Virus record (IMG/VR): IMGVR_UViG_3300017917_002466
Coordinates: 124,001-188,000 of that record
Reading direction: 5' to 3' (one strand)
DNA length: 64,000 nt
Shown here: positions 9,516-56,322 of the stretch, one piece after another
Numbering within the stretch: the first letter of the stretch is position 1
Layout: each line of letters opens with the position of its first letter
Translations under genes and position numbers: made by a program
The notes under the pieces: generated by a model
The model's database searches: none
The model's input: only the letters and a program-made list of their open reading frames with translations
Told to the model about the DNA's origin: nothing

Positions 9516-9574
9516 TTTGTTTTCCTTTCTGTACATTCAATATACATCAAGAAGACTGTTTTATCAAGCACATT

Positions 9575-12264: not shown

Positions 12265-12957
12265 ATGCAAAAACTTTCTAAAGAAGATTTCATTTCCAAG
12301 GCTAATCAAATCCACCAAAATCGTTTTGATTATTCAAAAGTTGAATACTACGATAATAAAACTAAGGTTTGTATTATTTGCAAAGAACATAAAGAGTTCT
12401 ATCAACAACCAAGCAAACATCTTCTTGGTCAAGGTTGTCCAATATGTTCAGACCAAAAATTAACATTAGATAAGTTTATTTCAAAAGCAAATCAAACTCA
12501 TAACTTCTATTACGATTATTCTGAAGTTGTTTATGTTAACTGGAAAACTAAAATTTGTGTGGTATGTCCAGCACACGGAAAGTTCTGGCAAAGACCAGAT
12601 GTTCATTCGTCTGGTCAAGGATGTCCTATATGTAAATCTTCAAAAGGCGAAAAAGAAGTTGAAAAATGTTTAACCAACAAAGGAATTACATTCATTCCAC
12701 AAAAACGATTTGAAGATTGTCGTGGTAAAGTCAAACCTTTACCTTTTGACTTTTACTTACCAGAACATAATATTTGTATTGAATACCAAGGTAAACAACA
12801 CTACCTAAAAGAAAGTAAGTTCTATTCGGAAGAACTTTTACAGAATGATAAAACAAAAGCCCAGTATTGTTTCGATAACAACATTAGGCTTATCGTGATC
12901 CCATATTGGGAAGACGTTTATAAATGTCTACGATTTTTTGGTAGCGAAAGAGGTTGA
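12265..12957 (+). CDS. free-standing endonuclease (two zinc-ribbon repeats plus DUF559/Vsr-like PD-(D/E)xK domain)
   Basis: FISKANQIH...YDYS...C..H...GCPIC repeats; PFDFYLP...IEYQGKQH; GGAGG RBS. Confidence 0.8.
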   Translation: MQKLSKEDFISKANQIHQNRFDYSKVEYYDNKTKVCIICKEHKEFYQQPSKHLLGQGCPICSDQKLTLDKFISKANQTHNFYYDYSEVVYVNWKTKICVVCPAHGKFWQRPDVHSSGQGCPICKSSKGEKEVEKCLTNKGITFIPQKRFEDCRGKVKPLPFDFYLPEHNICIEYQGKQHYLKESKFYSEELLQNDKTKAQYCFDNNIRLIVIPYWEDVYKCLRFFGSERG

Positions 12958-13092
12958 CTTTAAAAAAACATTAAATCCTTTCTGTAAAGAAATGAAAGGG
13001 CTCTGGTCGCTTGGCGTCCGTGGCCCCTTCCCCCAATTTACCAACCCATTGACTTGATACATACAATATATATCAAAAAAAGTTGTTTTGTC

Positions 13093-13190
13093 AAATGGAA
13101 TTTGTTTATGTAAAGATTGTCATAAAAAATTTCACAGTATGTTTGGTATAAAACATACTGTAAAATCTATGATAGACGATTTTTTAAAAA
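13093..13190 (+). pseudogene. HNH endonuclease C-terminal remnant
   Basis: Translates NGICLCKDCHKKFHSMFG, similar to the end of 24660..25343. Confidence 0.7.
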
Positions 13191-13457
13191 CTACCAACCC
13201 ATCGACTTAACCATCTCACGACATTTGATTTGAGCAGGAGTATATTCGAGGTCTTTCTTCCATTCACCAGTCGTCTTGTCTCTATAGGCGATAATATCGC
13301 TGGTATACACACTTCCGCACTCCGTCTCAAAGCCATAGACCCGACAGATGGTCGTGGAACCACGGGCTGAACCAAGAACGTCGGCTTCCCAGCCGTTGCG
13401 CTGCATCACCCGAAAGCCCTTCTTGTTCTTCGCATCCCACAGTTCGGCAGTCTTCAT
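13191..13457 (-). CDS. hypothetical protein
   Basis: ORF MKTAELWD with own promoter. Confidence 0.6.
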   Translation of the reverse strand: MKTAELWDAKNKKGFRVMQRNGWEADVLGSARGSTTICRVYGFETECGSVYTSDIIAYRDKTTGEWKKDLEYTPAQIKCREMVKSMGW

Positions 13458-13540
13458 TCCCCATCCCTTCGTTAAATGTTTGTTTCTCTCACCTACACAT
13501 TTAATATACAACAGAAAAGGGATTTTGTCAAGCCCTATAT

Positions 13541-13909
13541 TCACCACGAAGACTGGTAGATACAAGGCTTGTTTGCGGCGATGGCATTGTCCAGAATCTT
13601 CAAGGTGGACTCCAAGTCCTGAATGTAGTATTCGTCATAGTCCGTTCCACCGAAGAAAAATCCGCCCTGAGTAGGAAGCATTTTTTCCGCCAGAGAGAAG
13701 TCGCTCTTCTTGGCAGCGGCCAAGACCTTGTTGACGGTTGAACGAAGGGACTTCAGCTTGGTGACAGAGACGAGGGACCCCTGGCATTCGTCAATACCCT
13801 TCTGGCAGTTCTGTACGAACCATTTGTGAATTGCGTTGGCCTTGCGCCAATATCCGACATTAACGTTCTGGCCATTCACATTGCGGAACAAATACATATC
13901 CAGACCCAT
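13541..13909 (-). CDS. conserved phage hypothetical protein
   Basis: MGLDMYL, YWRKANAIH.WF, LPTQ.GFFFG and YQSSW family motifs. Confidence 0.75.
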   Translation of the reverse strand: MGLDMYLFRNVNGQNVNVGYWRKANAIHKWFVQNCQKGIDECQGSLVSVTKLKSLRSTVNKVLAAAKKSDFSLAEKMLPTQGGFFFGGTDYDEYYIQDLESTLKILDNAIAANKPCIYQSSW

Positions 13910-14234
13910 ACGCCTCCCTTATGTTGATTGTTTCTTTTCCCTACATATCTAATATACATCAAGGAAATTGTTTTGTCAAGCCTTAATTACGAAAAGAATC
14001 AACTCGCATTAGTTGATCTTTTCAAGAGAAAATGTTTCGCCTTCATAAACATATTTCAACTGAACATCTTCTGCTTCTGCTCTTGTCAAGATTTTGGGGT
14101 TTGCACCCTTTGCACCCTTTGCAACATAAATCGGCATCCCTTGAACAGTTCCCTCAAAGACCCAAACTTTCCCCTCTGCATCTGTTACCTTTGCAATGTA
14201 TAATTCTTTCATATTTGTTTTTCCCCATCCTCTC

Positions 14235-14645
14235 TTAATTTGTTTTTCCATAGTTGTCAAGGAATTTTTGAATTGCAGGAAGAAGAACATTATGAAAAGA
14301 ATCAACGATTATTTTAGCCGATTCATAATCTGGTGCTAAGTCTTCATTAGTCACGACGAATCCTGCATCCATATTGGACTGACCTTGATTAAAAATATTT
14401 ATAAAGACTTCCTTTGCCATTTGAAGAACAATATCGTCATCTTCATTAATGTTTGAATTAACAAGATTGGTTTTGAAAAACATATCTGCTTCCCAATCTT
14501 CTTTGGCGGCATTATATTCTTTTTGAACAAAAGTGTCAAAAGAAATTTTTTCATTGAGGGTTTTTTCAATATCATAATGCATTGAATGAAGTTCTTTCAA
14601 ACCAATATCATCAATCCATTCGATAAGACTGGGGAACTGAATCAT
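14235..14645 (-). CDS. hypothetical acidic protein
   Basis: 136 aa; GGAGG RBS; own promoter. Confidence 0.6.
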   Translation of the reverse strand: MIQFPSLIEWIDDIGLKELHSMHYDIEKTLNEKISFDTFVQKEYNAAKEDWEADMFFKTNLVNSNINEDDDIVLQMAKEVFINIFNQGQSNMDAGFVVTNEDLAPDYESAKIIVDSFHNVLLPAIQKFLDNYGKTN

Positions 14646-14715
14646 ATTTCCTCCCTCGTTAATGTTGTTCTTTCAACACATATAATATACAACAAGAACT
14701 GAAAAAAGTCAATCC

Positions 14716-15066
14716 CTATTTGACATTATCAAATTTTACCATAGCTGCATTTTTGCTATTAAAAGACCAGGCCCAATCACCAAACGATTCATTACCTGGA
14801 AACATTTCCGAAGGTGGATAATTATATACTTGACCTTTCTTTTTACCGTGCTTTTGAATCAATGAATATCCTTTTTGAACCTTAATCAAAAAGACTTCGT
14901 ATCCGACAGTCTTGCCGACCTCTCCATTGATTTCTTTTTCTATCTTTTGTTCGTAGACAGCTGCCTTGTCTGAACGACAGACCTGAACGTATTCGTATCC
15001 GTTCTTGGACTTCGTCTGAGGCAGCTTCTCGTAGGTCTTTGGGGCAGGTGCTTTGGTTCGTGCCAT
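14716..15066 (-). CDS. hypothetical protein
   Basis: GYEVF and E.FP.NE.FG.WAW; own promoter. Confidence 0.65.
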   Translation of the reverse strand: MARTKAPAPKTYEKLPQTKSKNGYEYVQVCRSDKAAVYEQKIEKEINGEVGKTVGYEVFLIKVQKGYSLIQKHGKKKGQVYNYPPSEMFPGNESFGDWAWSFNSKNAAMVKFDNVK

Positions 15067-15178
15067 TGTTCTTTCTCCCTTCCCTAATAATATACATCAC
15101 GGACGAAGGATTGTCAAGCCCTAAAAAAATGAATATGCCGCCAGTTTGGAATCCTTTCAGTTAAAGTTATCTTCTTTC

Positions 15179-15502
15179 CTATATAAAATTGACAATTCTT
15201 GAAATTCGATTTCGATAAACTTCGGTCTCAGTTATCGTTCTCTTTTTGCAATCTACGGTCACAAGGTATTCAATGTCTCCGTGCATATTGGTTCCGATGC
15301 CGTAGCCAGTCTCGCCAGCCTCATCGCCGCGAACCATCTCACAGAAGATGATGCGAGCAAGATATTCAGGATCATCCTGGCGGCCCTTCCCAACAGGACT
15401 GTTGACAGCCTTCACAACCTTATCCATCAGATTGTCGCCATCCCAATGCTGGTACAGATAGACACCTTCATCCTTGATAAACACCTGCGCTCTTGTTCCC
15501 AT
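15179..15502 (-). CDS. conserved phage hypothetical protein
   Basis: MGTRA, YLYQHWDG and HGDIEY motifs. Confidence 0.7.
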   Translation of the reverse strand: MGTRAQVFIKDEGVYLYQHWDGDNLMDKVVKAVNSPVGKGRQDDPEYLARIIFCEMVRGDEAGETGYGIGTNMHGDIEYLVTVDCKKRTITETEVYRNRISRIVNFI

Positions 15503-15552
15503 TGTTTTCCTCTCTTTCTATACAGATAATATACATCAAGGAAATTATTTTG

Positions 15553-15858
15553 TCAAGACCTTTTATTTCCACATTGACCACAGTAATTATCTTTGTCATT
15601 AAAAGCGTTTCCGCAATTACGACAATAATTATCTTTCTTACAATTTTTCACGGGAGTTGTAGCCAATGTACTTATTAATCCTTCATCTCTTGCTTCGTCA
15701 ATATGCCTGCAATTTTTACGATATTCAAATCCTCTACAATCACAAGTAATAACACCATCAACAAACTTAATAGTATAATCATTTCCACTGTATGAATGAC
15801 ATATAATCTCATGACATTCATCATTCATTATCAATTCAAAATCATCTTTAAAACTCAT
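15553..15858 (-). CDS. SWIM zinc finger plus zinc ribbon protein
   Basis: TCDC.GF.YR..CRHI; C-terminal CxxC...CxxC. Confidence 0.7.
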   Translation of the reverse strand: MSFKDDFELIMNDECHEIICHSYSGNDYTIKFVDGVITCDCRGFEYRKNCRHIDEARDEGLISTLATTPVKNCKKDNYCRNCGNAFNDKDNYCGQCGNKRS

Positions 15859-17418
15859 TGGGTAACCTTTCGTTTATATTCCACAATATTCACATGATCC
15901 ATTGATATGAAACAAATGATAATTTCTCTCAGTGATATATCCGTAATCATACATGCCATGTTTAACAGGAACCATAAACTTATTAGGTCGAGTTTTCCAA
16001 GTCTTCACTTTGCCGTTGACTCTCCAACGAACACAAGTACCATCAGCATTCATTTCATCATTCATCGCGAGAACATCATGATAATGAAGATTTTTAGCTT
16101 TATCAATTGTCAATGCAACCATCTTATTCCTCGCCTTCTATTCTGTCAATGTTGATTTCTTGTTCATCATTGTTAGTATCATTTTCGATACCGGCAACTT
16201 CACAAAGAGAATCCCAGACTCCAATTTCGATAGCATAATCTGTTAAATCACTTTTACGAAGTACCATATTGTTTCTCCCTTCAACAATAATATACAACAA
16301 AACATCCGATTTGTCAAGCCCTAAAATCTCTCGACAACCGTAAAGTGATCACCTTTCCCTCTTGCGGCGATCTCAGGCAATTGTTTTTCGCAACCAGCCA
16401 GAGTCCTGAAGCCTGACCAATCCATCTCGTCATAAAGAATAAGGAAGTTTGCGCTCTCAACATTTCCCCTTGGTTCACTTACCTTAATGAACGAACCAAA
16501 ATGTTCCTGACAGTAGATTAATTGGTCCATGATGTTTAGCCTTTCATTAGTTAGTTATCTTACGCCTGTAGTATCCATACGGAACTGACATATCAGGAGT
16601 ATTGACTTTATTACCAAAAAGCTGTTCACCTACACTCTTCCATTTTCTGTAGATCGGTTCATTGCGAACCATCAAAGACACATCATCACCCTTGACAATT
16701 ATCTCCCCAATGTTCAACAGACGATAACCCTCGCCAGGATAAACCACTTCGTAAAAGAAAGCTTTCATAGTTCACATACTCCAATAGGTTTCGGATGAAG
16801 GATCGCAACACAAGGGAGTGTTTACGGGCTGTGTGAATTCTTTGCCACTTATCAAATTCTTTTTTGTCACCTGCTTTTCGATTTTAGTATGAAAGATAGA
16901 TTCGTCTTCGATAGCATAATCGTCTTTATTTGTTAAAACTATTCCCATATCATTAAACTCTCTTTTCATAACACGAGTCATGAATCCCTTTGCAGTTCTT
17001 TTAAATGTAAACCTTTTGGGATTTAATGAACCACCTAATAGTCTTGTAGTCTTTTTATTGTATATGATATACATATTAAATCCTTTCTATGCATTTAATA
17101 TAATACATAAAAGAAGAAAAGTCAAGCCCTATTTTAATCTATTTAATAAATCAATTGCTTGCTGTTGATACTTTTCAACTTTATTAAAATTATCTGTGAT
17201 AAAGAAATAATCGGTTCCGGTGTTTCCTAATACACATGAACTATCCATCCAATATGAATATCCATCCGAGTCTGTATAAGACCAATAAAATCCATCAGAA
17301 GTCTTTATACTTAGGCTAACTCTTTTTGAATATTCCCATTCACTTTTGTCTCTATTCCATTGACGAGTAAATACATTATTCTTTGTAAAGACTAAATCAG
17401 TTATATTGTAATTCATAA

Positions 17419-17622
17419 TCAATCCTCCTTAAAAAACTTTTTTGTTTTATTCCTCGGCAATTCGTTCCAATTTCTTACCGCTATTTTATGATCAAATTCG
17501 TCTGCGTGTTCGTCATTACGACCATTATTTTGTTTGGGACCAGTCATCAAACACACATTACATTCGACATAAACATAACGATCATTCAGATCAGTACTAC
17601 CACAATTAGGACAAGGTTTCAT
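17419..17622 (-). CDS. Lar-like restriction alleviation zinc ribbon protein
   Basis: MKPCPNCGS, VECNVC, A...WN pattern. Confidence 0.55.
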   Translation of the reverse strand: MKPCPNCGSTDLNDRYVYVECNVCLMTGPKQNNGRNDEHADEFDHKIAVRNWNELPRNKTKKFFKED

Positions 17623-17632
17623 TTGATTTCTC

Positions 17633-17811
17633 CTAGCTGTTATGATTATAATAACAATCATCAGAACAACAAGTTTGATTATTAGATTCTGGCTTAAAAT
17701 CACAACCACACCAAAGACAATTACGAACTTCATTCATCCATGCATCAGGACAACCATGTTCATGACAAAGAACACCATTAATAACGAGAGTTTCACATGA
17801 TCGACACATAG
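17633..17811 (-). CDS. Cys-rich protein, paralog of 9575..9796
   Basis: MCRSCETLVINGVLCHEHGCPDAW. Confidence 0.65.
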
Positions 17812-17869
17812 ATTGTTTTATCCTTTCTGTATATCTAATATACATCAGAATGATTATTATGTCAAGCCC

Positions 17870-24484: not shown

Positions 24485-24558
24485 GCTTCAGCCAATCTAT
24501 TTTGGAGTTTATACATATAATTATATCATTTGATATTTGATTTGTCAAGAAGTAATAT

Positions 24559-24659
24559 CATAAATATTTGTAGAAGTTAGGAGACAGCCTCCGGCCGGTG
24601 GTTTCTTTACCGCAATAAAGATTATCTTAACTTCCTTACTTAACCTTTGCGGAGGAGCC
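24559..24659 (+). ncRNA. late-type promoter plus structured pseudoknot leader RNA, copy 2
   Basis: gaagttagga/tcttaacttc; tcttta-ccgcaa-taaaga; ttgcgg(agg). Confidence 0.8.
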
Positions 24660-25343
24660 ATGATTCTTTCTAAAACTGTTCAAGTTAAAATTAGCCGAAG
24701 AAATATTAAACATTATTTGTCTCTTGGTTATGTTATTCCAAAACATACTGATATTTATAATCGCCTTTGTAATCAAATAGGGATTCTAATTGAAGTATCT
24801 ATTGGACATTTACTCAAAGGAAGTAAAGTAAAAGTTCTTTGTAAATGTGACGAATGTGGAAAAGAAAATTTAACTTATTACAACGAATCTCTTAAATTCA
24901 AATATATTTGTAAAAATTGTGCTGCTAACCAACCTAAAAGATTAGAAAAGTTAAAAAATGCTATGACTGGTAAAAAACATTCCGAAGAAACTAAAAAGAA
25001 AATGAGTGAACATAATTGGGCAAAGAATCATACTGGAAAACTACATCCTTGTTACAATTCTAATCTTACTTTTGAAGACCGATATCTAGGTAGAAATAGA
25101 AATGTACAGCCAGAAAATTATCAATGGAAAAAGAAAGTTAAAGAAAGAGATAATCATATTTGCCAAAAATGTGGCTCAAAAGAAAATCTATGCGTTCATC
25201 ATCTTAACAACTATAAATCATTTGAAAACGAAAGGTATGACATTAAAAATGGAATTACCTTATGTGTTGGATGTCATAAGGAATTCCATAAAAGATATGG
25301 TCGTTTAACTACCAAAGAGCAAATAAAGGATTTTATAGGGTAA
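24660..25343 (+). CDS. HNH homing endonuclease with NUMOD3-like motif
   Basis: KHSEETKKKMSE; RDNHICQKCG...VHH...NGITLCVGCHKEFH. Confidence 0.85.
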   Translation: MILSKTVQVKISRRNIKHYLSLGYVIPKHTDIYNRLCNQIGILIEVSIGHLLKGSKVKVLCKCDECGKENLTYYNESLKFKYICKNCAANQPKRLEKLKNAMTGKKHSEETKKKMSEHNWAKNHTGKLHPCYNSNLTFEDRYLGRNRNVQPENYQWKKKVKERDNHICQKCGSKENLCVHHLNNYKSFENERYDIKNGITLCVGCHKEFHKRYGRLTTKEQIKDFIG

Positions 25344-25620
25344 TGCTAGAACGATCCACAACTTCAAAAGGCTCTCGTTTCATTACTTTATCAGCCAAAA
25401 ATCTAACTGACTCTTTCTTGTGTTTGCAAAGAAGTACAGCCATCTTACGGCCTTCGTCGTTATCTTTGTTGTCAACCATCTTAATGACCATCTTGAGCAA
25501 GTCGGTATCCATTCGGATAATGTCAGTCCATCCACTGAAGGCTTCATCTGTGTCTTCATCCTGAATAGACATCTCAAATGCATTGGCATACTTTCTATAC
25601 TTTTCAATCAATACTGCCAT
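25333..25620 (-). CDS. hypothetical protein, paralog of 236..598
   Basis: FSGWTDI and HKKESVRFL. Confidence 0.65.
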   Translation of the reverse strand: MAVLIEKYRKYANAFEMSIQDEDTDEAFSGWTDIIRMDTDLLKMVIKMVDNKDNDEGRKMAVLLCKHKKESVRFLADKVMKREPFEVVDRSSITL

Positions 25621-25632
25621 TATTCAAACCTC

Positions 25633-26481
25633 CTAACGGGCATTTCGCACAACAGTGTCCTGCGCGGGGCTTCTTAGCGCATGGATGCGCTCTTCTGCTA
25701 TCCGGCAGTATTTCTCTTCCTTCTCAATTCCGATGTAATTCCGGCCAGTATTAATACAAGCGATTGCAGTAGTACCGGAACCAATGAACGGGTCTAAAAT
25801 TGTATCACCACAAAAAGAATAATAAGAAATCGCTTTTGTAGCCAACTCTAATGGGAACGGAGCTGGATGTCTATTACGCTCCGGGTTGATTTTCCATACA
25901 TTTGTTCTTTCGTAACCATCCAGCACTTTGGATTTTTTTATTATCTCTTGTGAATGAGAACGAATTGATTTGTCCAGTAAGCACCCCGGCTTTGAAAACA
26001 CCAGTATATATTCTGTAATATTAAATGTTTTGTACGCAACTGGTCTACGATGGTGCGAAAATTTGATTGCTCGACTTGATGCACCATCTGGCTTTACCCA
26101 TATAATGTCGTCTAAGAATGTCCATTTTTTTGAAAGCATAGAACAAACATCAAACGGTATTGGTATTCGTTTTGATTCTGTGCTTCTTTTTTTCCTCGCT
26201 TCAATAACGCATGACAAGTTCAGCACAAATATTCCCGCCGGTTTTATCTTTGTATGTGCCGTATTAAAAACTGTGTCTAAAAAAGATAGATACGAGGCAT
26301 ACGATTCGTATTTTGAATAACACCTTGCATTATAATACGGCGGTGATGTTAAAATCATATCCACGCTCTCGTCTGGTATAGTCTGCATGACTTCGAGGCA
26401 GTCCCCGCATGTTACGGTATTTGTCTTCGGCGCAGGACGCGCCGTGTCTTGCCCCGCGCCTATAATTTCAGAATTTGCCAT
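25633..26481 (-). CDS. DNA methyltransferase (N4-C/N6-A, beta-type motif order), last unit of array 2
   Basis: GDCLE, ILTSPPY, HPAPFP, ILDPFIGSGTT, GIE; ATG 5 nt after GTTAGGT. Confidence 0.9.
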   Translation of the reverse strand: MANSEIIGAGQDTARPAPKTNTVTCGDCLEVMQTIPDESVDMILTSPPYYNARCYSKYESYASYLSFLDTVFNTAHTKIKPAGIFVLNLSCVIEARKKRSTESKRIPIPFDVCSMLSKKWTFLDDIIWVKPDGASSRAIKFSHHRRPVAYKTFNITEYILVFSKPGCLLDKSIRSHSQEIIKKSKVLDGYERTNVWKINPERNRHPAPFPLELATKAISYYSFCGDTILDPFIGSGTTAIACINTGRNYIGIEKEEKYCRIAEERIHALRSPAQDTVVRNAR

Positions 26482-26516
26482 ATTGCACCTAACGGTTCGG
26501 CAAACGTAAGCCGTGC

Positions 26517-26738
26517 CTACGAATGCGTGCGACAAGGATATTTTACGTGAACGCACTGACGGTCGTAATTCTCCACACAGCACGTTGTTTGGCATGGCTT
26601 GCTTTGCCTGTTGTTTGTCTGTTGAGCGAGTACAGCGGATTTCAGAGTTTGCCAATGCAACCGCCCCTTAGTTTGCAAGTGCTCCGATAACTCATCAAAC
26701 CATTGAACCGCATCAGATATTTCGTTACTCATTGGCAA
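26517..26738 (-). CDS. cassette ORF with attC-encoded Cys-rich tail
   Basis: One ORF per cassette; AGGAG RBS. Confidence 0.55.
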   Translation of the reverse strand: MPMSNEISDAVQWFDELSEHLQTKGRLHWQTLKSAVLAQQTNNRQSKPCQTTCCVENYDRQCVHVKYPCRTHS

Positions 26739-26780
26739 ACTCCTATCAGTAAATTTAAGAGCGAAATTGCAAACAACGTA

Positions 26781-27095
26781 TCACGCACCCGCCCGTTGTT
26801 TGTCCGTTATCCACTTACAGCACCGAGGGCACCAAGCATCTATACCGCTATATGGATACACTGGTGCCTTACCACATGTAGGACAAATTACGGGCTGCGT
26901 GTGTTGTGGGACCGTGGGCAATTCTACCGCAATCTCTGCGCGGCGATCTTTTACCCATTGCTCCATTTCGATTTGATCATTACTCAATACCACCAACGCA
27001 TCATTAGGGATTTTCCCACCATGACGAAAAGGTGCCGTGACCTTGTTGACTCGGCAAAGGAACATCTCAAGCCTGTGTATGTCTTCGACGCGCAT
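26781..27095 (-). CDS. cassette ORF with attC-encoded zinc ribbon
   Basis: CPTCGK...CPRC lies inside attC 26771-26909. Confidence 0.6.
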   Translation of the reverse strand: MRVEDIHRLEMFLCRVNKVTAPFRHGGKIPNDALVVLSNDQIEMEQWVKDRRAEIAVELPTVPQHTQPVICPTCGKAPVYPYSGIDAWCPRCCKWITDKQRAGA

Positions 27096-27721
27096 AATAA
27101 TTCCTTTTGAATTGCCCATGTACCACAACGTTTAGCGCACGGGTGATAGTTTGCCCGTGGCTCGACAAAGCCCACACTTTACCATACCAGTACCAGGATC
27201 GTCGGATAAATACTCGCCACTACCCATACACGTAGGGCAAATTTTACCCTGCGCTTGTTGGTTGATGCGGAGGGAAGCCACCTCAGCCTCCAGCGTGGCG
27301 ATAGCCCGTTCAAGAGACAAAAACCGATTCATAACAAATGATGGATCAGAGAAATCAATTTCGTTTACCACGCCACACCTCCATGTATAAAAAGCTGACC
27401 GAAGTTTCAACCAACGTCTGCCCTATGCTGACGTTTCTGTTTCAGAAATGTGGGAGTCATCGACCGAACAGCATTGGGCTGTTGTTTGCTGTGCGCTCGC
27501 TTCCACAAAACCTGCGGTTTGCGGAGTATCGAGAGGGCACCAATTTGGTATTTCAAAAGTAACATTGATAACAGACCTACCGCCATATAGAGGATGGTTG
27601 CAAATAAATCCACTCTGACTGTAGCACAAGGGACATTCGTTACAGCAACTAATTTTGATTACACGCATGAGCAAACCGCCTATCTATTCTCAAAAGAGCG
27701 CATTGCAACCAACGGTATCGG

Positions 27722-27958
27722 CTACGCCTGAAGTTTGCCCGTACCGTGACAACGCCAACAGTCCTTACCATTGTTATAATTATTGGTAGAACCAGACCCA
27801 GCAGGGAAACAGTCAGGGCAAATTTTAGGCTGGCCGTGTTGGTGGATGTGACGCTTGCTTCCACCAATTTTGCGGCGGGTCTTAAACTGATCCTCGCCAT
27901 AGTGGCCGGTTATGTAATTATCAAGTTCCTGACTCATGCGCTTATCGTTGCCGAACAT
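27722..27958 (-). CDS. cassette ORF with DnaJ-like Cys-rich tail
   Basis: ICPDC..GSG...CWRCHGTGK; GGAGG RBS. Confidence 0.6.
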   Translation of the reverse strand: MFGNDKRMSQELDNYITGHYGEDQFKTRRKIGGSKRHIHQHGQPKICPDCFPAGSGSTNNYNNGKDCWRCHGTGKLQA

Positions 27959-28590
27959 ATTTCCTCCCGCCGCTTACCAGTTAAAAGCAAGCGGCATTTA
28001 CACCAAGTTTGGCGCATTCGCACGAAGTTACGCCGTCTTATCGCACCAACAAGTAGAACACTGCTTGTGAGCAACATCAAACGGGCATATATCCAAGCCC
28101 CATTTACAAGAAGGCGTAATTTTGTGCTGCGCCTGTTGGTGGATGTGCCGCGTTTCTTCCGCAATGTCAGGCTGGCAATCTTCCAGCATGATAGGGCAAG
28201 AACCGGCGTGATCCACTATTTCATCTTGAGTGCCAAAGAAGCCGCAATATTTACATTTGCCAGCCATATAATAAACCTTTCTTGAAACGCGGCATTTACA
28301 CCAACGTTTGCTCAACCGCACGATAGTTGTCGCAATCGATCTACCACTGCTGTAACATAAGACACATAAACCTTGTGCTCAACAAACTCTTTGTAAAGAC
28401 TATCGGCTATTGCGGCAATTTCGTGCTTGAGCTGTTGTACGTCTGTGGAAGGAGCGGCTTCCTCAGCTTTAAGTGCTCGCATCACGGCAGGGCAACGGTC
28501 TACGTTTATACCCATACCGCTACACGGCAAAATGAATGACTTGTTATCCACGCGAGCACCTCCTAAATCGTAAAGAGCGACTGGAATTGC

Positions 28591-28722
28591 GTACAACGGT
28601 TCAGCAACGTGCGCCGTGCCTACAGGGCTTCACGGCAATATGGACACCACACAAACCCAGTATGGGCCTTGCCAAGACGAAGCCACTCGTGAAATTGGCA
28701 TGGCGTACTTGCCGTGTTGTGC
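28591..28722 (-). repeat. attC-like site, near-identical to 29438-29570
   Basis: About 105 bp internal identity with 2 visible substitutions; encodes NTASTPCQ[FY]HEWLRLGK.HTGFVWCPYCREAL. Confidence 0.85.
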
Positions 28723-28844
28723 GATGAATTTGTTGACTCCCTAATGTAAGCGCGAATTGCTTCTAACGCGGTAAAATCTTTTGAATATTTACACATTCTC
28801 TCTACTTGCAAAACGGCTTCGTGTATATCCATTCGCGCCTCCAA
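28620..28844 (-). CDS. cassette ORF (body family shared with 31415..31663)
   Basis: ALE.IRA...ESTNSSHN shared; tail shared with 29468 cassette. Confidence 0.65.
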   Translation of the reverse strand: MEARMDIHEAVLQVERMCKYSKDFTALEAIRAYIRESTNSSHNTASTPCQFHEWLRLGKAHTGFVWCPYCREAL

Positions 28845-28895
28845 TATGGTTCAACAAACTTTTGCACAACGGTTCGGCAAACGGGCGAAGTTGGT

Positions 28896-29063
28896 TTACC
28901 TCGACACGGAGGGCTGTTCTACGCCAATTTCGCCCTTTGCCTGTTGTGCGATGTTGTTTTTAATTACCTTAATTTCAGCGGCGATTTCTCGTAACCGAAG
29001 ATTATTAGCTACAACAAAGCACCACAACGATAAATAAGCCAGAAAGACAAAAAACCATTTCAT
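28896..29063 (-). CDS. cassette-borne 55 aa membrane protein
   Basis: MKWFFVFLAYLSLWCFVV... Confidence 0.55.
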   Translation of the reverse strand: MKWFFVFLAYLSLWCFVVANNLRLREIAAEIKVIKNNIAQQAKGEIGVEQPSVSR

Positions 29064-29109
29064 AATCGCCGCCTATAAATCAAAGATTAAAAACCATTTC
29101 GCCTAACGT

Positions 29110-29406
29110 CTACCGCATCGCACGAAGTTGCCGCGCCCAAACCCACAACCTACGATAAACCCCTGACGGTAGATTATTGTTATTGTCTACAAAGGCTTCC
29201 ATTTCTGCGGCAATTTTGTGCTGCGGTTGTTGCACGGGGCGCTTCGCCCGAACCGTTCGGCCCGTTTCCAAATTATCCAGCGCGGTGCGGACTGCTATTG
29301 CCCCGCTGTGGCCGAGAGAATAATTGACAACGGCAACCGCTTTGCCGTTACGACATACCTCAAACGCATAGCCAGTATCTTCTATCTCATATTTGGCACC
29401 GCGCAT
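29110..29406 (-). CDS. cassette ORF
   Basis: AGGA RBS; tail ..WARQLRA shared with 30599 cassette. Confidence 0.6.
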   Translation of the reverse strand: MRGAKYEIEDTGYAFEVCRNGKAVAVVNYSLGHSGAIAVRTALDNLETGRTVRAKRPVQQPQHKIAAEMEAFVDNNNNLPSGVYRRLWVWARQLRAMR

Positions 29407-29437
29407 ATTAACATCCTATCTTTAAGGGCCGAATGGC

Positions 29438-29570
29438 GTGCAACGTTCTCGGCAATGTACGCCGTGCCTACAGGGCTTCACGGCAATATGGACACCACAC
29501 AAACCCAGTATGGTCCTTGCCAAGACGAAGCCACTCGTGATATTGGCATGGCGTACTTGCCGTGTTAGGC
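29438..29570 (-). repeat. attC-like site, near-identical to 28591-28722
   Basis: GCCTAAC...GTTGCAC. Confidence 0.85.
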
Positions 29571-29701
29571 GATGTAGAAAGCGACTCCTTAACGTCCTCA
29601 AATTTGACAAATTCACCGTCGTCGCACTCCTCCATCCGAGCATGCGTGCCATACATATCGCTCGTGACCTTATAATCGTACCGTGTCAAATTTACATCCA
29701 T
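29468..29701 (-). CDS. cassette ORF (NLTRY...G..VKF.D.KE body family)
   Basis: Body related to 32217..32474 and 31696..31962. Confidence 0.6.
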   Translation of the reverse strand: MDVNLTRYDYKVTSDMYGTHARMEECDDGEFVKFEDVKESLSTSPNTASTPCQYHEWLRLGKDHTGFVWCPYCREAL

Positions 29702-30598
29702 ATATCGCTCTCGCTTTCTATTTCGCATAACGTCTGCCACACGGTTGATCGTTACGGCCTACCTTGCCAATCACCAGATTCACGTTCAGGAACATCATAT
29801 CGCCGTTTAGATAAATCTCCATAATATGAATAGGCCGTAATGTCAACCTGTGGCTGTTGTACGTCTGTGGAAGGAGCGGATTCTTTAGTTAATGCGGTGC
29901 AGCCATGACCGACACCCTGAACACCTTGCCACTCCCACCGAGCTTGTATATAGTGACGACAATCTTTGAACATTTGCACCGCCTTATAGATCGTTTAGAG
30001 CGACTGGAATAGCGTACAACGTGTGCCAAAGTATGAAGGTGTGAAACAATTTGCGAAGCGAACATACTTTGGCTGTTGTGTGTTGGTTTTCGCTCCACAA
30101 TATTAAAAAGCAATTTGGCGATTGTAACGAGGCCAACTCAACCACCCTCGTATCCCATCGGGCGTCCCCTTTGGTGGTCTACATAGCCGTGGACGGCTTA
30201 GCCAAATTGCCTATAAATTCAAAGAGCGAAAACTTACACACAACGTATACGCTATTGTGAAGTAACTATGTTATTTAGGCGCTCCTCTAACTGTGAAATA
30301 AGCGACAATGCCTGTGGATACGACTCCATTGCTGACGGAACTGAATCCCGTAGAAACTTGAGCGCCGCCACAATAGCGTTGTTGTGCGAAGGTTTTAACG
30401 CCTCCTCACAAAACATTTTTATGCGACCCCACGCCAGTTGTTCAGACGAAGACCCTTTTGCATTAACAAGTGCGCTAACAGATGATAGTTCATTTTCAAG
30501 CATAAAAACTCCTAAATAAAAAGCGTTAAAACTTTTGCACAACGGGATCAGGCATTGCCCGACAGTTTGCGCGGTGCTTCACAAGCGATACAAACGCT

Positions 30599-30895
30599 TC
30601 ACAAAGCGCGAAGTTGCCGCGCCCATTTACTTAACTGCTCTGCACTTGGTACGCCACCGATATTTGCTATGCGCACACCATCCTCAAGCTCAGTGGCAAT
30701 TTGGGCGATAGCCGCGCTTTGTGTGTTGGTTGATGTGGAAGGAATGCCCACCTTATTTTTCTTTCGGCGGGTAATCTTTCTCCACCACGAATGAACAACG
30801 GAACAGATAATAGCAACCAATCCTATTGCCAACGCTACGCCAAGGAACACCAGCCCAAACACATCATGAAACGTCCATACGAAAATAGAACCCAT
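30599..30895 (-). CDS. cassette ORF, membrane protein
   Basis: AGGAG RBS; long hydrophobic segment. Confidence 0.6.
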   Translation of the reverse strand: MGSIFVWTFHDVFGLVFLGVALAIGLVAIICSVVHSWWRKITRRKKNKVGIPSTSTNTQSAAIAQIATELEDGVRIANIGGVPSAEQLSKWARQLRAL

Positions 30896-30954
30896 TTTTT
30901 TCTCCTTACCCGCCGAACTATTAATTCAAAAGCGGGATTTATTTTGCACAACGG

Positions 30955-31131
30955 TCAGCGCACAGCCGATGCGGTACGCTTACCATTTTTGCTACCCCGT
31001 TTCGGCTTGCGCTTGTTGTGTGCTGTTCGGCGCGACTCTAATCGCTCCCAGGCGGCCAGCTCCGCATCACCACGGGCCTCCGCCGCACCCATCACAGCAT
31101 CAAAATCATCAGGACCATAATCGTTTTTCAT
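30955..31131 (-). CDS. cassette ORF of 58 aa; basic tail shared with 6456..6761
   Basis: HNKRKPKRGSKNGKRTASAVR vs ANKRKPKRGKRSTGRTASAVR. Confidence 0.6.
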   Translation of the reverse strand: MKNDYGPDDFDAVMGAAEARGDAELAAWERLESRRTAHNKRKPKRGSKNGKRTASAVR

Positions 31132-31414
31132 TTGGCCGCCTTTACAATAACGCTCTCACGCCGAATGGCATCACAACGTTCACCGCACGCCGGATGCGGT
31201 ACTCCGTTTACGGCTGCGGGTGTTGTGCGAAGTGCGGCCCGCTTCCGCAAGTATTGGCGCGACTTCGCTACGGTGCGCCCACTGACCTTCCTTGTCAAAC
31301 ACAAACCTTGCAATTACTTTTCCACAGCAAATCTCAGTTTTCAATGAATACCACTGCAGTTTTTTTCGCGCCATTATAACCTCCAAAAGGGCCGCATTTT
31401 GCACAACGTCTGCG

Positions 31415-31663
31415 CTACTGGTGCTGTGCGCATACTAAGCAGGCATGTTTTTTACACTTTCGACTAGTAATTACACCACAGTCGTAACCAGCTCCGATGT
31501 GCGCTTCGCATGGCACCATAGCGCTGTTGTGCGATGAATTTGTTGACTCCGCCAGTGCTGCGCGAATGGTTTCCAATGCACATTTACAATCTGGACACTG
31601 GTGTTGATCCACGACTATTTGAAAATGAGCCAAGGCTTTCTTAATTTCCATTCGCGCCTCCAA
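31415..31663 (-). CDS. cassette ORF
   Basis: 5' end near-identical to that of the 28620 cassette. Confidence 0.6.
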   Translation of the reverse strand: MEARMEIKKALAHFQIVVDQHQCPDCKCALETIRAALAESTNSSHNSAMVPCEAHIGAGYDCGVITSRKCKKHACLVCAQHQ

Positions 31664-31695
31664 TATGGTTCAGCAAATTTTTCGCACAACGTATG

Positions 31696-31962
31696 CTAAA
31701 CGGCTGATGCCTTGCGCTGGATAAAATAGTCGTGAACATCTGGATACCACACACATTTACGACATTTATATAAATCCTCGTAATCGCTACCATAGTACGT
31801 TTCACATTCCTTACAGCGCAAGGTTTCAGCCTTTAGCGGTTGGTTGCCTGTTTGTGAAAGCTCCTTAGTGTCGGCAAATTTTAAATATACTCCGTCACCA
31901 CCTTGATGTATGTCGCAATCACAATCGCAACTATTAAACACAAATGTTCTGAAATTTGCCAT
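31696..31962 (-). CDS. cassette ORF with zinc-binding tail
   Basis: AAGGAG RBS; CKEC...CRKC inside attC. Confidence 0.6.
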   Translation of the reverse strand: MANFRTFVFNSCDCDCDIHQGGDGVYLKFADTKELSQTGNQPLKAETLRCKECETYYGSDYEDLYKCRKCVWYPDVHDYFIQRKASAV

Positions 31963-32216
31963 ATAATATCGCTCCTTTCACAAATTGCAACCAACGGTTG
32001 CCAAAGTATGAAGTTTACGTTTCGTAAATTTGCGAAGCGAACATACTTTGGCTGTTGTGTGTTGGTTTTCGCTTCACAATAATGTAAGGCGCGGGGCTGC
32101 ATAGGCTGAGTAGTGACCACCGCAGCATATATCTCCACCGAAAGTACGGTGAACCCTCAATTGTCACCGCGCCATATAAATTCCAAAGAGCGAAAACTTT
32201 CACACAACGGTTCGCA

Positions 32217-32474
32217 CTACTGCTGTTCGTGCCAATCGGTTCGTTTGCCAGTAAACCTACTGCACGCATGGCACGTGGGGCTGACACAACCACCTATGTT
32301 ACGTTTGCAAGATTGGCATGACAGCATAGCGCTGTTGTGCGATGAATTTAGAAGCTCCTTAATGTCGTCAAATTTAACCCAAGCCCCCTCATCGGATGCA
32401 ACCATTTGATGAAAATTATCCATAGTTTTAGTACGGTTAAACCACTCTAAATTATAACGGGTTAAATTTGCCAT
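32217..32474 (-). CDS. cassette ORF with zinc-binding tail
   Basis: 5' UTR identical to the 31696 cassette, different attC. Confidence 0.6.
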   Translation of the reverse strand: MANLTRYNLEWFNRTKTMDNFHQMVASDEGAWVKFDDIKELLNSSHNSAMLSCQSCKRNIGGCVSPTCHACSRFTGKRTDWHEQQ

Positions 32475-32868
32475 ATAATATCGCTCCTTTCACAAATTGC
32501 AACCAACGTTTACGCAACGGGTGAAGTCGCCACAACTTTTAGATTATGACAATACCCTTGCTTTAATGTACAATGATCCGATAAACACTTTAAACTACAC
32601 TCGATTTCACCCTTGCGTTGTTGGTTGTCTGTAAAATTTTCTACCTTAGATGCAAGAGCGGCACACCATACGAGATGGGTATACTGCTCCTTATCTAACG
32701 TAGATTTACAACCAATACTATCAAACCATTCTCTACAAGTGCCGCTCATATAAACTCCAAAGAAAATTTTATTGCAACCAACGTTTGACAAATGGTGAAG
32801 TCGTGTACTCACGATTTAGGCTTTTCGTTACCATTTGTTTGTTGTAAGATGTTTATGCCACTTCCTTA

Positions 32869-33165
32869 TTATCCGTTGGCGCATCTTTGTTTTTTGATAT
32901 AGTCTAAAAGTGTAACCTGTTCTTTTTCTGGTAACTGTTCAATCACTTTTTTATTGAAAAAATATTCATCCGTAAAACCACCAACAAAATCTAACCATTT
33001 TCCTGAAATCTTTGGTAATGGTAACTCGGTGCCCCGATAAGATGCAGACATAAATATCTCTGCTGGTACGCCGTTTAATTTCCGGTAAAGTGTTCCCCCA
33101 CCACTTTTCTGATGTTCCTCTGGATACGGTGGGTTCCAAACGCCTGTGAATTTTAGTTTTTGCAT
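32869..33165 (-). CDS. cassette ORF ending before its attC
   Basis: AGGAG RBS; 98 aa. Confidence 0.65.
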   Translation of the reverse strand: MQKLKFTGVWNPPYPEEHQKSGGGTLYRKLNGVPAEIFMSASYRGTELPLPKISGKWLDFVGGFTDEYFFNKKVIEQLPEKEQVTLLDYIKKQRCANG

Positions 33166-33496
33166 TTTTTCTCCTGCGCCAACATCTGAATATCAGAGTG
33201 GCATAAATTTCTTACAACGTTCACCGCACAGCCGATGAATTGCGCTGCCAGTTACAAGAAAGATTTTTTACACATACATCACCAAACCCTGCTTGATAAC
33301 TACACATTCCACTATATGCACAAAGCAATTTTTCGGCTTGCGGTTGTTGTGGGATGTGGAGCGCAGGTTCCTTAGTGTCCTGCGCGGCACGCTTCGCCCA
33401 AAAATCAATCCATTCATCACGAGTAATAGCTGGTTTAGATGGCATAATGTGACTTTCTATGAGCCGCGCCTATCATATAGACCTGCGCGGAATTTA

Positions 33497-33560
33497 CCAC
33501 AACGTCTGCGCAACTGCGCGTAGTTGGGCCTTGACAATTACGACGCTTGCGCTGTTGGTG
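33497..33560 (-). repeat. attC-like site of first cassette of array 2
   Basis: CACCAAC agcgcaa...ttgcgcagac GTTGTGG; R'' matches the cassette start GTTGGTG. Confidence 0.85.
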
Positions 33561-33795
33561 GATGTGCCTGCCGACTCCGCTTGCTCTGCGGGCGAACCGG
33601 CGTCAACAACAGCGCGAGGAAATGATCGGCGGCGCGATTGCCTATAGTGTGCCGTTTGGCCGATGAATCACGGCTACCCTCCCAACGAGCACAGTCGTAA
33701 TACGCCATGGCGATGTTGGCCTGATAGGCACGGTACAGCCCCTTGTCGCGCCGTAACGCCCTTGTGAATACCTTGAACGCCTCTTGAAACTCCAC
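33538..33795 (-). CDS. first cassette ORF of array 2, paralog of 6456..6761
   Basis: AGGAGG RBS; GTG start. Confidence 0.7.
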   Translation of the reverse strand: MEFQEAFKVFTRALRRDKGLYRAYQANIAMAYYDCARWEGSRDSSAKRHTIGNRAADHFLALLLTPVRPQSKRSRQAHPPTAQAS

Positions 33796-33851
33796 AGGCG
33801 CCTCCTTATTGTTCGCCCGCCTACAATCGCGTTCTCGGCAGGCATTTACAC

Positions 33852-33891
33852 CAACTAGTTAAATGATGTCATTCCCTTGTCTAACTCTTTG
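33852..33891 (-). other. attI-like recombination site, copy 2
   Basis: CAAAGAGTTAGACAAGGGAATGACATCATTTAACTAGTTG, identical to 7641-7680. Confidence 0.8.
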
Positions 33892-34095
33892 ATTTTCATA
33901 AAATTTTTTAAACTTATTGCTCAATTTATCTAATGGATAACCGTCTTGTATTAAAGCCCTTATTACAGCATACCGAATATATTTAGAACGAGTAATTTTT
34001 AGCTTTTCTCCTTGATGCAAACAACCAGTTGCTAAAACTGGTTCTAAATATATCTTATAGTCACTTCTTATCTTATCAGACCATTTTGCTTTCAT
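33859..34095 (-). CDS. small basic protein, possible ribbon-helix-helix DNA-binding protein, overlapping the attI-like site
   Basis: ITRSKYIRYAV motif; promoter TTGACA-N17-TATATT at 34102-34130. Confidence 0.5.
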   Translation of the reverse strand: MKAKWSDKIRSDYKIYLEPVLATGCLHQGEKLKITRSKYIRYAVIRALIQDGYPLDKLSNKFKKFYENQRVRQGNDII

Positions 34096-34368
34096 ATTTT
34101 AAATATATATTATTTTAATGAATTTGTCAACCCCTCTGAACAATTATATCATCAGCCAACATTGCAATACCTTTGTTATCGCTTCTTCTATTTAAAATTG
34201 CGGTCTTGAAATCTCTTGTCATTAACTTCTTTGCGACTTCGTATTCTTCATCAGTCAAATTGAATGTAGATGGATATACCCTCATATTTCGGTTGATCGC
34301 AGACATATCCCAAACTTCAAGAACCTTTGTCTTGCTTGTCAGTTTAAAGTAAGGCTGAATACGTTCCA

Positions 34369-34740
34369 TTAGGCAACCTTTCGACTTTCCTTGTACTTCC
34401 TGAAGTTCTCTACAATCTGATTATGTTTTTCTCTTGAGCAGTAAAAACACCAGTTGCCTTGTAGTTTGTTTGAGTCCGGCAAAAGACAACCAAACATTGT
34501 TTTCTCAACTCCATTAATAACTATTCTCTCAATTGAAACAATACGGGCTTGTTCAAAGTCAATATCAAATTCACAGTTTGAAGCTTCTTCCGCTTTCTTC
34601 TTTATCTGGTCGGCATAATCTCGATTCATCCGTTCAATGACGTTACGAAGCTCTCCGTTCTCTTTCTCCAATTTCTCAACCTTATCTTGAAGAAGTTTGG
34701 CGTCAACTAGATAATCCAATCCTTTGAAGAAATTCCACAT
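34369..34740 (-). CDS. hypothetical coiled-coil protein
   Basis: AGGAG RBS; own promoter. Confidence 0.6.
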   Translation of the reverse strand: MWNFFKGLDYLVDAKLLQDKVEKLEKENGELRNVIERMNRDYADQIKKKAEEASNCEFDIDFEQARIVSIERIVINGVEKTMFGCLLPDSNKLQGNWCFYCSREKHNQIVENFRKYKESRKVA

Positions 34741-34795
34741 AAAGTTCTCCTTTTCTATAATATAATGATTGCCAAATGTTTTGTCAAGGTCTTTC

Positions 34796-34990
34796 TATAA
34801 ATACATATAGAAGTTAAGAGACAGCGACTGATCCTCGTTTCTTTGCTTACCCAAAGATTATCTTAGCTTCCTCACTTAAACTCGGTAAGGAGTATCTTAT
34901 GCCAAGAAAATCCACTCGTGAAGAATTCATTACTAAAGCTAATCAAATCCACAATTTCAAATATGATTACTCCAATACAACGAATCAATT
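34796..34990 (+). pseudogene. leader RNA copy 3 plus N-terminal endonuclease remnant
   Basis: cttacc/ggtaag pseudoknot; ATG 34899 MPRKSTREEFITKANQIHNFKYDYS then homology lost. Confidence 0.75.
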
Positions 34991-35835: not shown

Positions 35836-36082
35836 TATAAATATATATATGAAGTTAGAAGACAGGGAGTAATTAACCTTTCTTTGCCAATCCAAAGATT
35901 ATTCTGACTTCCTTGTTGTGGCTCTAAAAAACATCTTCAAGCCCATCATATTAACAACTTCAGAGATTTCAAAGAACAAAGGCTTCTAGTCGAAAACGGT
36001 ATTACTTTGTGTCAAGAATGTCATAAATTAATTCATAAACAATTCGGTCGTTTAACTAATAGAAAAAACTTAAACGAATTTA
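35836..36082 (+). pseudogene. leader RNA copy 4 fused to HNH C-terminal remnant
   Basis: Leader breaks after P1; CCGSKKHLQAHH...NGITLCQECHKLIHKQFGRLT. Confidence 0.75.
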
Positions 36083-46648: not shown

Positions 46649-47339
46649 TATGAACCCCTTTCAATTGGTGTTACTTATGAAGCTCTTCGTCTATTTCTTC
46701 TTCGTACTCTTCATCTTCTTCAAGACTATCAAGGTCTATCTTTCTAAGGTAATCTTTTACCTTCTGTCTACTTTTCTTTTGAGACTTGCCGACTTTCTCC
46801 ATTCCATAGTTGTCAGCGTCATAATAGTTTTCACGGAAAGTCTTACTCATTTGATTAGGCTCCTTTTCCCTTTCTTACTCTTTTGAAAAAGCAACGAGTA
46901 CATTGCGTTAAATTGTTTGCATCAGCAGGCTGAATGAAATATTGGTTGCAGAATTTACAACGACAAATCTTCCCAGTCCACATAATGCGGATACGTTCAA
47001 AAATGTTATAGTGCTTTGGTATTGTTCCAAACAAAGAAAACTTCTTGAGCCAGCATTGTATTGGATTCTTGATTGATAATTCGTATTCATTGATTTCTTG
47101 GAAGACATTGCATTCTTTGACTTGGTCAAAAAGCATACTGAAGTGTTCAAAACTGCCATCCCCTTTATGTAAGAAGTGGCAAAAACCATTCTCTTGATGT
47201 GGTTTGTCTTTTTGAATTGACCAATATGGGCAAGTTCCATCACTATCCCAACAATATATTCCCTGTGGAATATTCTCAATTTTTCTTTCTTTCATACTTT
47301 CAATATACATCTGTTTGCGAAAAAGTCAAGTAGTAAAAT

Positions 47340-47476
47340 CATAAATATTTATAGAAGTTAAGAGACAGCGACTGATCCTCGTTTCTTTGCCAGTACAAAG
47401 ATTATCTTAACTTCATCTACACAAACCGTACTGGAGGTTCTATGATAGTTTCTAAAACAATTCTAATAAAAGAGTT
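47340..47476 (+). pseudogene. leader RNA copy 5 plus minimal HNH remnant
   Basis: ccagta/tactgg pseudoknot; ATG 47442 MIVSKTILIKEF resembles MILSKTV...IKDF ends of 24660..25343. Confidence 0.7.
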
Positions 47477-53816: not shown

Positions 53817-53875
53817 ACAAACCTTCCTTTCTTATGATTATAATATACATCAAAGGAAAGAAAATGTCAAGAGGA

Positions 53876-53912
53876 AAATAAAAAAGATTGCCGGGCTTAA
53901 GACCCGGCAATC
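53876..53912 (-). terminator. intrinsic terminator
   Basis: agattgccggg-cttaaga-cccggcaatct next to an A-tract. Confidence 0.75.
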
Positions 53913-53988
53913 TCCAGTCCGTGAGTGGTTTGGGACGCTCAAGCAAGAAGCGCTAGCGTACTTGCCTGCTGTGTTGCTCCCGCCTTGT

Positions 53989-55188
53989 TCACTTCGTGTT
54001 TCCTGCTCCTTCAACACCCAAGTCAAGCGCAAGGTCTTTGGCTGTCTTGGCTGTCAGGAGATTGACAAGTTCATTAGCCCCTGAAGCCGACCTGCTATTA
54101 CCTTCACCCATGACAACAGTCGGAACCCAGTTACCAGCATAACCCTTGATAGCTTCAGCATATGCCTTGTTGATTTCAACAATTGCCTCAATCTTCTGTT
54201 CAAGGGCTCCGTTAGCCTGCATAACAAGCCTCTTATATGATGCCTCACCTTCTCCACGAAGGATGTTTGCACGCTTCTCCTGCTCGGCGGTCTTTGCTTC
54301 AAGTGTAGCAACTTCAAGCTTCTGCTGAGCTTCTGTTACTGCCGTTGCTTTAATTACTTCTTGATCCCACTTTGCCTTGGCTGCATCGGCCTCTCCGTTC
54401 TTGGCAACAGTGATAGCCCTCTGCTCGGCCTTCTTGGCTTCTGCTATGGAAGTTTGAACGTCCATTGTAATCTGTTGCTGTTGCTTAATCTGGTCTTCAA
54501 CAGCCTTGTCATACGGAAGCTGGTCAATCGCAAAGTTGAAGGTACGGATTCCGAAGTCCTTGATGGCTGACTCTTCCTGACGGGCAAGAAGTCCACTACT
54601 ATCTTTGACAATCTCAACCAAAGTTACAGTCTTCTCTGCACCTGTCATTTGGTCATTGGTCTTAACTTCTTTAGAGATAGTCTTGTACACACCATTGGAA
54701 ATCTGGTCTTCTACATATGAGATAAGGTAGTTGCGCTTCTCGGCATAAGACTCCTTGGAACTCATAAGAGGGCCAGTCATATAGATTGCCTTGTTCACAA
54801 TAGTCTGAATCAACTGAGTTTCAAGGGATGCCTGATTACTAAACTTATTCTGAACCTTGGTAAGATAATCCTTATTCAGTGGCATTTCATACTGAACTGA
54901 TCCCATCATTGTTCCGTGTCCACCATCATTGAAACGAACGGAAGTCTTGAACTGATAGATGGAACGCTTCTTGTACTTGGTGACCTTTCCGAAACCTTGC
55001 CACTTGATACCTGCATCGGTATACCAAGCGAGCTTTCCTGCGATGGGTGACTGAATACAAGCGATTTCGTCAGTATCTACGTTCTCAAAGATGTTACCCG
55101 CAAAAGCGATAACAATGATACCGACGACTACGATACTAACGATAGATGCAATTACTCCAACCGGATTGCGCTTCAATTGCTGGGTCAT
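53989..55188 (-). CDS. SPFH/Band 7 domain membrane protein
   Basis: N-terminal TM, VRFNDGG, coiled coil with EA repeats. Confidence 0.8.
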   Translation of the reverse strand: MTQQLKRNPVGVIASIVSIVVVGIIVIAFAGNIFENVDTDEIACIQSPIAGKLAWYTDAGIKWQGFGKVTKYKKRSIYQFKTSVRFNDGGHGTMMGSVQYEMPLNKDYLTKVQNKFSNQASLETQLIQTIVNKAIYMTGPLMSSKESYAEKRNYLISYVEDQISNGVYKTISKEVKTNDQMTGAEKTVTLVEIVKDSSGLLARQEESAIKDFGIRTFNFAIDQLPYDKAVEDQIKQQQQITMDVQTSIAEAKKAEQRAITVAKNGEADAAKAKWDQEVIKATAVTEAQQKLEVATLEAKTAEQEKRANILRGEGEASYKRLVMQANGALEQKIEAIVEINKAYAEAIKGYAGNWVPTVVMGEGNSRSASGANELVNLLTAKTAKDLALDLGVEGAGNTK

Positions 55189-56312: not shown

Positions 56313-56322
56313 ATTAAACCTT

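Follow-up and report, generated by a model that had tools for sequence, protein, structure and literature searches.

Introduction

Bacterial integrons are the textbook device for rapid gene capture in bacteria. A complete integron comprises an integron integrase (IntI), a tyrosine recombinase with an IntI-specific additional domain, next to an array of cassettes; a head site (attI), at which incoming cassettes are inserted at G|TT; and a promoter (Pc) upstream of the head site that reads into promoterless cassettes. Each cassette carries an attC site, an imperfect hairpin of 57-141 nt with R''/R' (..AAC / GTT..) and L''/L' boxes. In canonical attC, the extrahelical bases lie opposite the AAC triplet on the bottom strand, and the central spacer has 5-6 nt on each arm (Nivina et al., PMC5027507). 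In phages, only small clusters of attC-type sites lacking an integrase (CALINs) had been reported, including in virulent phages and with DNA methylases as recurrent cargo, and these sites are recombined by IntI1 (Qi et al. 2023, PMC9892861). Two further systems are relevant for comparison: the archaeal XerA and bacterial XerCD recombinases, with the elements that exploit them, which act on duplex dif-type sites, and the PeSL mobile regulatory cassettes of T4-type phages, which are probably promoter plus stem-loop units exchanged by homology in hyperplastic regions of small early genes (Arbiol et al. 2010).

Here, we analyzed a 64-kb stretch of a giant phage genome (hereafter, the window; positions 124001-188000 of the 253,664-bp IMG/VR contig IMGVR_UViG_3300017917_002466), in which an earlier note had proposed that an identical 40-bp attI-like site heads two cassette arrays. 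Our literature searches found phage CALINs but no conserved phage head site, no Xer-like recombinase linked to hairpin cassette arrays, and no report of cassette turnover in phage populations.

Results and discussion

We confirmed that the 40-mer occurs exactly twice in the window, on the minus strand. No other match appeared even with 3 mismatches, and 0 are expected in 100 shuffles. The flanks are unrelated on both sides, apart from a GAAAA(T) just upstream, and identity ends after GTTG (next base T versus G). Both copies contain GTTAGAC, and each lies behind a TTGACA-N17-TATATT promoter. In the interval 25000-34400, the promoter of copy 2 was the only strong minus-strand match (11 of 12), although both promoters are consensus matches only, without transcription data. 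The window is of low G+C (0.34), has only distant cultured relatives, and encodes NAPRTase, NAD synthase, Thg1, and an R2K ATP-grasp protein among its accessory genes. Megablast of the region against deposited phage genomes found nothing, Rfam gave no hit in the window, and no tRNA was found. In IMG/VR, the exact 40-mer and a relaxed 25-nt pattern returned only this contig and one relative. The main features are as follows.

33852-33891, minus strand: att copy 2 (the 40-mer), with GTTAGAC at 33885-33879, box AAGGGAAT at 33878-33871, palindromic core AAC-TA-GTT at 33860-33853, and crossover GTT at 33855-33853; it overlaps the last 11 codons (including the stop codon TAA, 33861-33859) of the 78-aa gene
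7641-7680, minus strand: att copy 1 (identical 40-mer), with GTTAGAC at 7674-7668 and no gene body upstream, at about +11 to +50 of the transcript from the 7726-7698 promoter
33859-34095, minus strand: 78-aa gene whose 3' end overlaps att copy 2
34102-34130, minus strand: early promoter TTGACA-N17-TATATT driving the 78-aa gene and, by inference, array 2 (the analogue of Pc)
7698-7726, minus strand: early promoter TTGACA-N17-TATATT directly upstream of att copy 1 and array 1
25657-33851, minus strand: array 2, about 25 cassettes, G+C 0.46 against a backbone of 0.34, with junctions A(A/C)C|GTTG at 33503, 33218, 32782, 32507, 32208, 31995, 31690, 31407, 31177, 30952, 30543, 30244, 30020, 29731, 29444, 29107, 28870, 28597, 28305, 27713, 27415, 27129, 26777, 26493, and 25657
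4824-7640, minus strand: array 1, seven hairpin-bounded cassettes (junctions 7347, 7093, 6812, 6453, 6215, 5922, 5628) plus a terminal PKD-domain secreted-protein gene (4824-5591) that lacks a complete hairpin
30946-31021, plus strand: example attC-like hairpin, shown on the better-folding non-coding strand, with a 7-bp R box (CACAACG/TGTTGTG), a 3-nt bulge, a 6-bp L box, a 1-nt bulge, and a further stem, all bulges being on the 5' arm (z = -4.6)
6447-6522, plus strand: example attC-like hairpin of array 1 with the same architecture

Cassette arrays

The two G+C-rich blocks (0.46-0.48) that follow the copies consist of short ORFs separated by junctions, and have the layout of integron cassettes. 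Upstream of each junction, an ..ACAAC motif pairs with the GTTG.., and a second box pairs further in. This second box differs in sequence from site to site but stays complementary within a site: 61 of 222 candidate junctions have a perfect 6-nt L-box partner, against a mean of 3.9 (maximum 10) when partners are swapped among sites. Eight window sites folded as single-stranded DNA gave z-scores from -2.7 to -4.9. Site lengths were 52-199 nt (105 sites), and R' is GTTGKNN more often than a strict GTTRRRY.

The ORFs are Pfam orphans except for an N6/N4 DNA methylase and a PKD-domain protein; Pfam on 20 cassette proteins found nothing except one weak YfdX match. The methylase is the last bounded cassette of array 2 (26493-25657) and is followed by a 95-aa gene (25333-25620). 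The 340-aa ORF listed there (25633-26655) reads through two cassette junctions (GTTAGGT at 26493, GTTGTGC at 25657), and the real methylase probably starts at the ATG at 26471, like its 279-aa homologue in L165 (here and below, L numbers denote the related metagenomic phage loci that we compared). The last unit of array 1 encodes a 255-aa PKD/Ig-like protein with a signal-peptide-like N-terminus, and it ends in only the left half of a hairpin site (CACACAAAGCGC), directly before the next early promoter. Many cassette ORFs (e.g., 32217-32474, 31415-31663, and 6456-6761) run into their own hairpin site, and unrelated proteins therefore end with similar peptides (..S-H/Y-N-S/K..) encoded by the conserved TCnnACAACA motif; several are Cys-rich. 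As the cargo includes DNA methylases, counter-defence is a likely theme.

The hairpins differ from canonical attC. The non-coding strand folds better in 59 of 67 sites (21/24 and 38/43), which agrees with bottom-strand use, but all unpaired bases, a 3-nt bulge and a 1-nt bulge, lie on the same arm as its AAC triplet, and the spacer is 1 versus 4 nt. An offset of +3 dominates in both array types. The placement of bulges on the coding strand is as on a canonical bottom strand, but we did not adopt the coding strand as the main folded substrate, because cassette ends map to GTT on that strand and the complementary strand folds better. This site class therefore fails a defining attC feature, which fits an enzyme without the IntI domain that holds those bases.

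The 40-mer as a cassette insertion site

The 78-aa gene, the end of which overlaps copy 2 (an overlap not recognized in the earlier note), has about 100 homologue clusters in metagenomes. The protein is conserved up to ..KF.KFY, after which the tails vary. The DNA after that point is nevertheless conserved: across about 37 distinct versions of the site behind homologues of the gene, the consensus is AAAaTCAA..TT..A.AAGGGAAT..C-(10)-TAGTTG. The AAGGGAAT box falls in all three reading frames (19/14/4), a fixed 15 nt before GTT, and the stop codon lies anywhere from -33 to -2. This is a DNA element, not a coding constraint. A Shine-Dalgarno reading of AAGGGA, and the mini-ORF MTSFN inside copy 1, were dismissed because the box is conserved where no ATG follows. 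In contrast, GTTAGAC, which the earlier note had likened to the accessory integrase-binding repeats of attI1, is only loosely conserved (GTTAnAn) and is absent from short forms of the site. The left end of the duplicate in the window coincides with the left end of the conserved stretch; copy 1 is therefore the whole site and nothing more.

In every relative with sequence downstream, cassettes of the same kind start right after GTT. Nine sets of contigs share the site but carry unrelated sequence straight after GTT, and in seven sets at least one pair has identical upstream DNA. L009 and L010, which come from two samples of one study, are 100% identical except for one 229-bp cassette at the head, bounded by GTTGT. 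Six further sets (L004/L046, L051/L052/L054, L059/L061, L073/L074, L044/L045, and L060/L068) have 100% identical upstream sequence (400 nt; 319 nt for L044/L045) and chance-level identity (about 25-30%) after GTT. In L060/L068, identity stops right after GTT, where the next bases are AGG versus GGT. The first cassette of L046 lies at +568 in L038, so L038 has two more cassettes at the head. Several contigs break within about 70 nt of the site, and L013 ends exactly at TAGTTG, as expected from a branching assembly graph. This is what an attI site does, and the main inference of the earlier note, that cassettes are captured at the 40-mer at the head of each array downstream of an early promoter, is thus supported, although "attI-like" holds by function only. 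Without read-level data for this phage itself, activity at copy 1 is inferred only from the array behind it.

Candidate recombinase

No tyrosine recombinase was found in the window, either by Pfam on all ORFs of 250 aa or more or by phmmer with lambda Int and E. coli XerC against every six-frame ORF, and none was found within 10 kb of the site in L006-L010; 190 kb of the contig were outside our analysis. The earlier note had not mentioned this absence. The neighbours of the 78-aa gene are not conserved between phages, so no cis partner emerged. In L009 and L010, an IS607-like pair (7509-9761; a MerR-HTH plus resolvase protein of 255 aa and a TnpB-like protein of 411 aa) sits just upstream of the 78-aa gene, but it is probably an unrelated insertion.

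The phmmer search, which also covered 81 loci, found one hit only, in L081. In L081, the 78-aa gene is cut off after about 35 codons and is followed by a 282-aa recombinase, then GATTCATCATAACTTAGTTG, then cassettes. The recombinase defines a clade of about 45 clusters, in which the catalytic R-K-H-R-H-Y positions are invariant. In all seven loci examined (L081, L164-L167, L247, L248), the gene is followed within 25 nt after the stop codon by TTCAxCxTAACTTAGTT(G/A) and by a co-oriented array, whereas integron integrases are divergent from theirs. Strict hairpin sites occur almost only downstream of it; two upstream matches in L165 look like chance. These loci sit in quite different phage backbones, one between terminase and portal genes. 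The site in the window shares the core CATCAT..AAC-TA-GTT, the hairpins have the same geometry in both kinds of array, and the methylase cassette of array 2 recurs in the L165 array at 82-89% nt identity. However, the upstream half of the site (AAGGGAAT) is absent from recombinase-adjacent sites, so recognition by the same enzyme is not proven.

The enzyme is Xer-like: it is closest to archaeal XerA structures (4a8e, 5hxy) and has the full catalytic set. It scores below the NCBIfam cut-offs for integron integrase (140.7 bits against the 265-bit cut-off of TIGR02249) and has 29 residues where IntI4 has 65, so it lacks the IntI-specific insertion. Whereas Xer enzymes act on duplex dif-type sites, the partner sites here are long hairpins arranged as direct repeats between genes; a dif-like arm in the 40-mer was noticed by eye only. 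A scan of IMG/VR with the recombinase profile gave no close relatives and did not return this contig as encoding a clade member. None of the listed clusters sits on a contig of the sizes that carry the 78-aa gene. In species genomes, the recombinase profile gave one close hit on a 9-kb unbinned-type contig, and the rest are ordinary Xer at <=39% identity, giving no host clue. No isolate phage in INPHARED has the 78-aa gene or a close recombinase homologue.

For the 78-aa protein, AlphaFold2 gave a mean pLDDT of 79 with two central helices. Most of the best Foldseek PDB matches are ribbon-helix-helix proteins (Arc, CopG, NikA, antitoxins), with target TM 0.67-0.85 for the closest but non-significant E-values (0.7-3), and Pfam gave no hit. 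A DNA-binding accessory or regulatory role at the AAGGGAAT box is a reasonable guess and no more.

Interpretation

Taken together, we consider it likely (probability roughly 0.7) that the 40-mer is the phage-side attachment site of an integron-like cassette system that belongs to phages. Circular cassettes, each carrying one imperfect hairpin site, would be inserted by a tyrosine recombinase at the GTT of the core TAAC-TA-GTT, such that a new cassette lands first in line behind an early promoter. This phage would carry two such platforms, one at the 3' end of a conserved 78-aa gene with a possible ribbon-helix-helix fold and one consisting of the bare site behind another early promoter. We infer, but have not demonstrated, that the enzyme is a Xer-like recombinase of the clade found directly upstream of the same core (TAAC-N2-3-AGTT) in other phages and is supplied in trans, and that the non-coding strand is the folded substrate. 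The system is integron-like in operation but not an integron by membership. In comparison with the phage CALINs described previously, there are about 25 + 8 cassettes, a head site conserved across tens of lineages, population-level turnover at that site, and a candidate phage recombinase. The head site, the turnover, the recombinase, and the different hairpin geometry together point to a cassette economy among virulent phages, expressed from early promoters. It is about as likely as not that phages run their own integron analogue, independent of IntI, in which a Xer-like recombinase with mirrored hairpin sites maintains a shared pool of small early-gene cassettes, and giant phages such as this one keep only the landing pads and are served in trans by recombinase-carrying phages or another source; on this view, cassette capture evolved, or diverged very deeply, a second time in viruses. 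The system also offers a second structure-specific recombination system to compare with IntI/attC, which bears on how strand choice and orientation are enforced, and could give a new tool for inserting genes without sequence constraints.

It remains possible that the arrays are ordinary integron cassettes from bacterial hosts, inserted by the host's own IntI at a secondary (attG-like) or mimic attI site, i.e., a large CALIN. IntI1 recombines the attC sites of phage CALINs (PMC9892861), IntI can insert cassettes at genomic GTT sites (bioRxiv 10.1101/2022.09.11.507474), the core AAC-N2-3-GTT appears to resemble the attI1 simple site, and no recombinase was found in the window. Array G+C is 0.44-0.49 whatever the backbone (0.28-0.46), even in L164, L004, L007, and L034, whose backbone is 0.28-0.30, which suggests an outside pool with its own composition. 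Nevertheless, we regard this possibility as unlikely. The unpaired bases lie on the arm opposite to that of canonical sites, and such inversions cut IntI1 recombination by orders of magnitude (PMC5027507). The site pattern is absent from 185,579 species genomes. The one cassette protein tested has only 4 homologue clusters, all on short (<=4.1 kb) metagenomic contigs; one is the first cassette of phage locus L012, another sits in a lambdoid-phage-like context, and none was found in a bacterial chromosomal context where the context could be read. In addition, a dedicated non-IntI recombinase sits next to the same core in seven phage loci.

Shuffling by homologous or microhomology recombination between conserved intergenic repeats, as with PeSL modules, appears very improbable. 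The junction sequences (AACGTTGTGCnAAAT) are similar enough to allow short-homology exchange, and attC segments of 50-130 nt are shared at 85-96% between phages. Moreover, the window is full of repeated early-promoter modules: about 25 copies of TTGACA-N17-TATATT on the minus strand (1123-17866 and 53822-58848) have conserved flanks of 50-70 nt and resemble PeSL modules, and several precede G+C-richer genes. However, the 40-mer shares only (TA)GTTG with cassette junctions, yet cassettes join it precisely there; the covariation of L boxes points to recognition of structure, not homology; array 2 has no internal promoter repeats; and a recombinase gene is linked to the core in 7 of 7 loci. It is equally doubtful that copy 1 is a functionless remnant, left by deletion of a second copy of the 78-aa gene or by an assembly chimera across a short repeat, with array 1 carried along passively. 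Copy 1 does equal the last 40 nt of the gene region, the contig is a metagenome assembly, and weak similarity (GAAAA) continues a few bases upstream. But what was kept is exactly the conserved site and nothing of the gene body, it sits right behind a consensus promoter and heads cassettes of the same hairpin type, and a 40-nt repeat is probably shorter than the k-mers used for final assembly.

Apart from the arrays, a repeated element of about 100 nt was found at 24544-24646, 34781-34882, 35838-35923, 47325-47426, 62743-62828, and 63538-63638. It has an ATAAATA box followed by nested inverted repeats (GAAGTTAAGA..TCTTAACTTC around CTTTG..CAAAG). Single-sequence folds were not exceptional, but the repeats change in a compensatory way between copies, and the element may be a late-type promoter with a structured leader, or a terminator.
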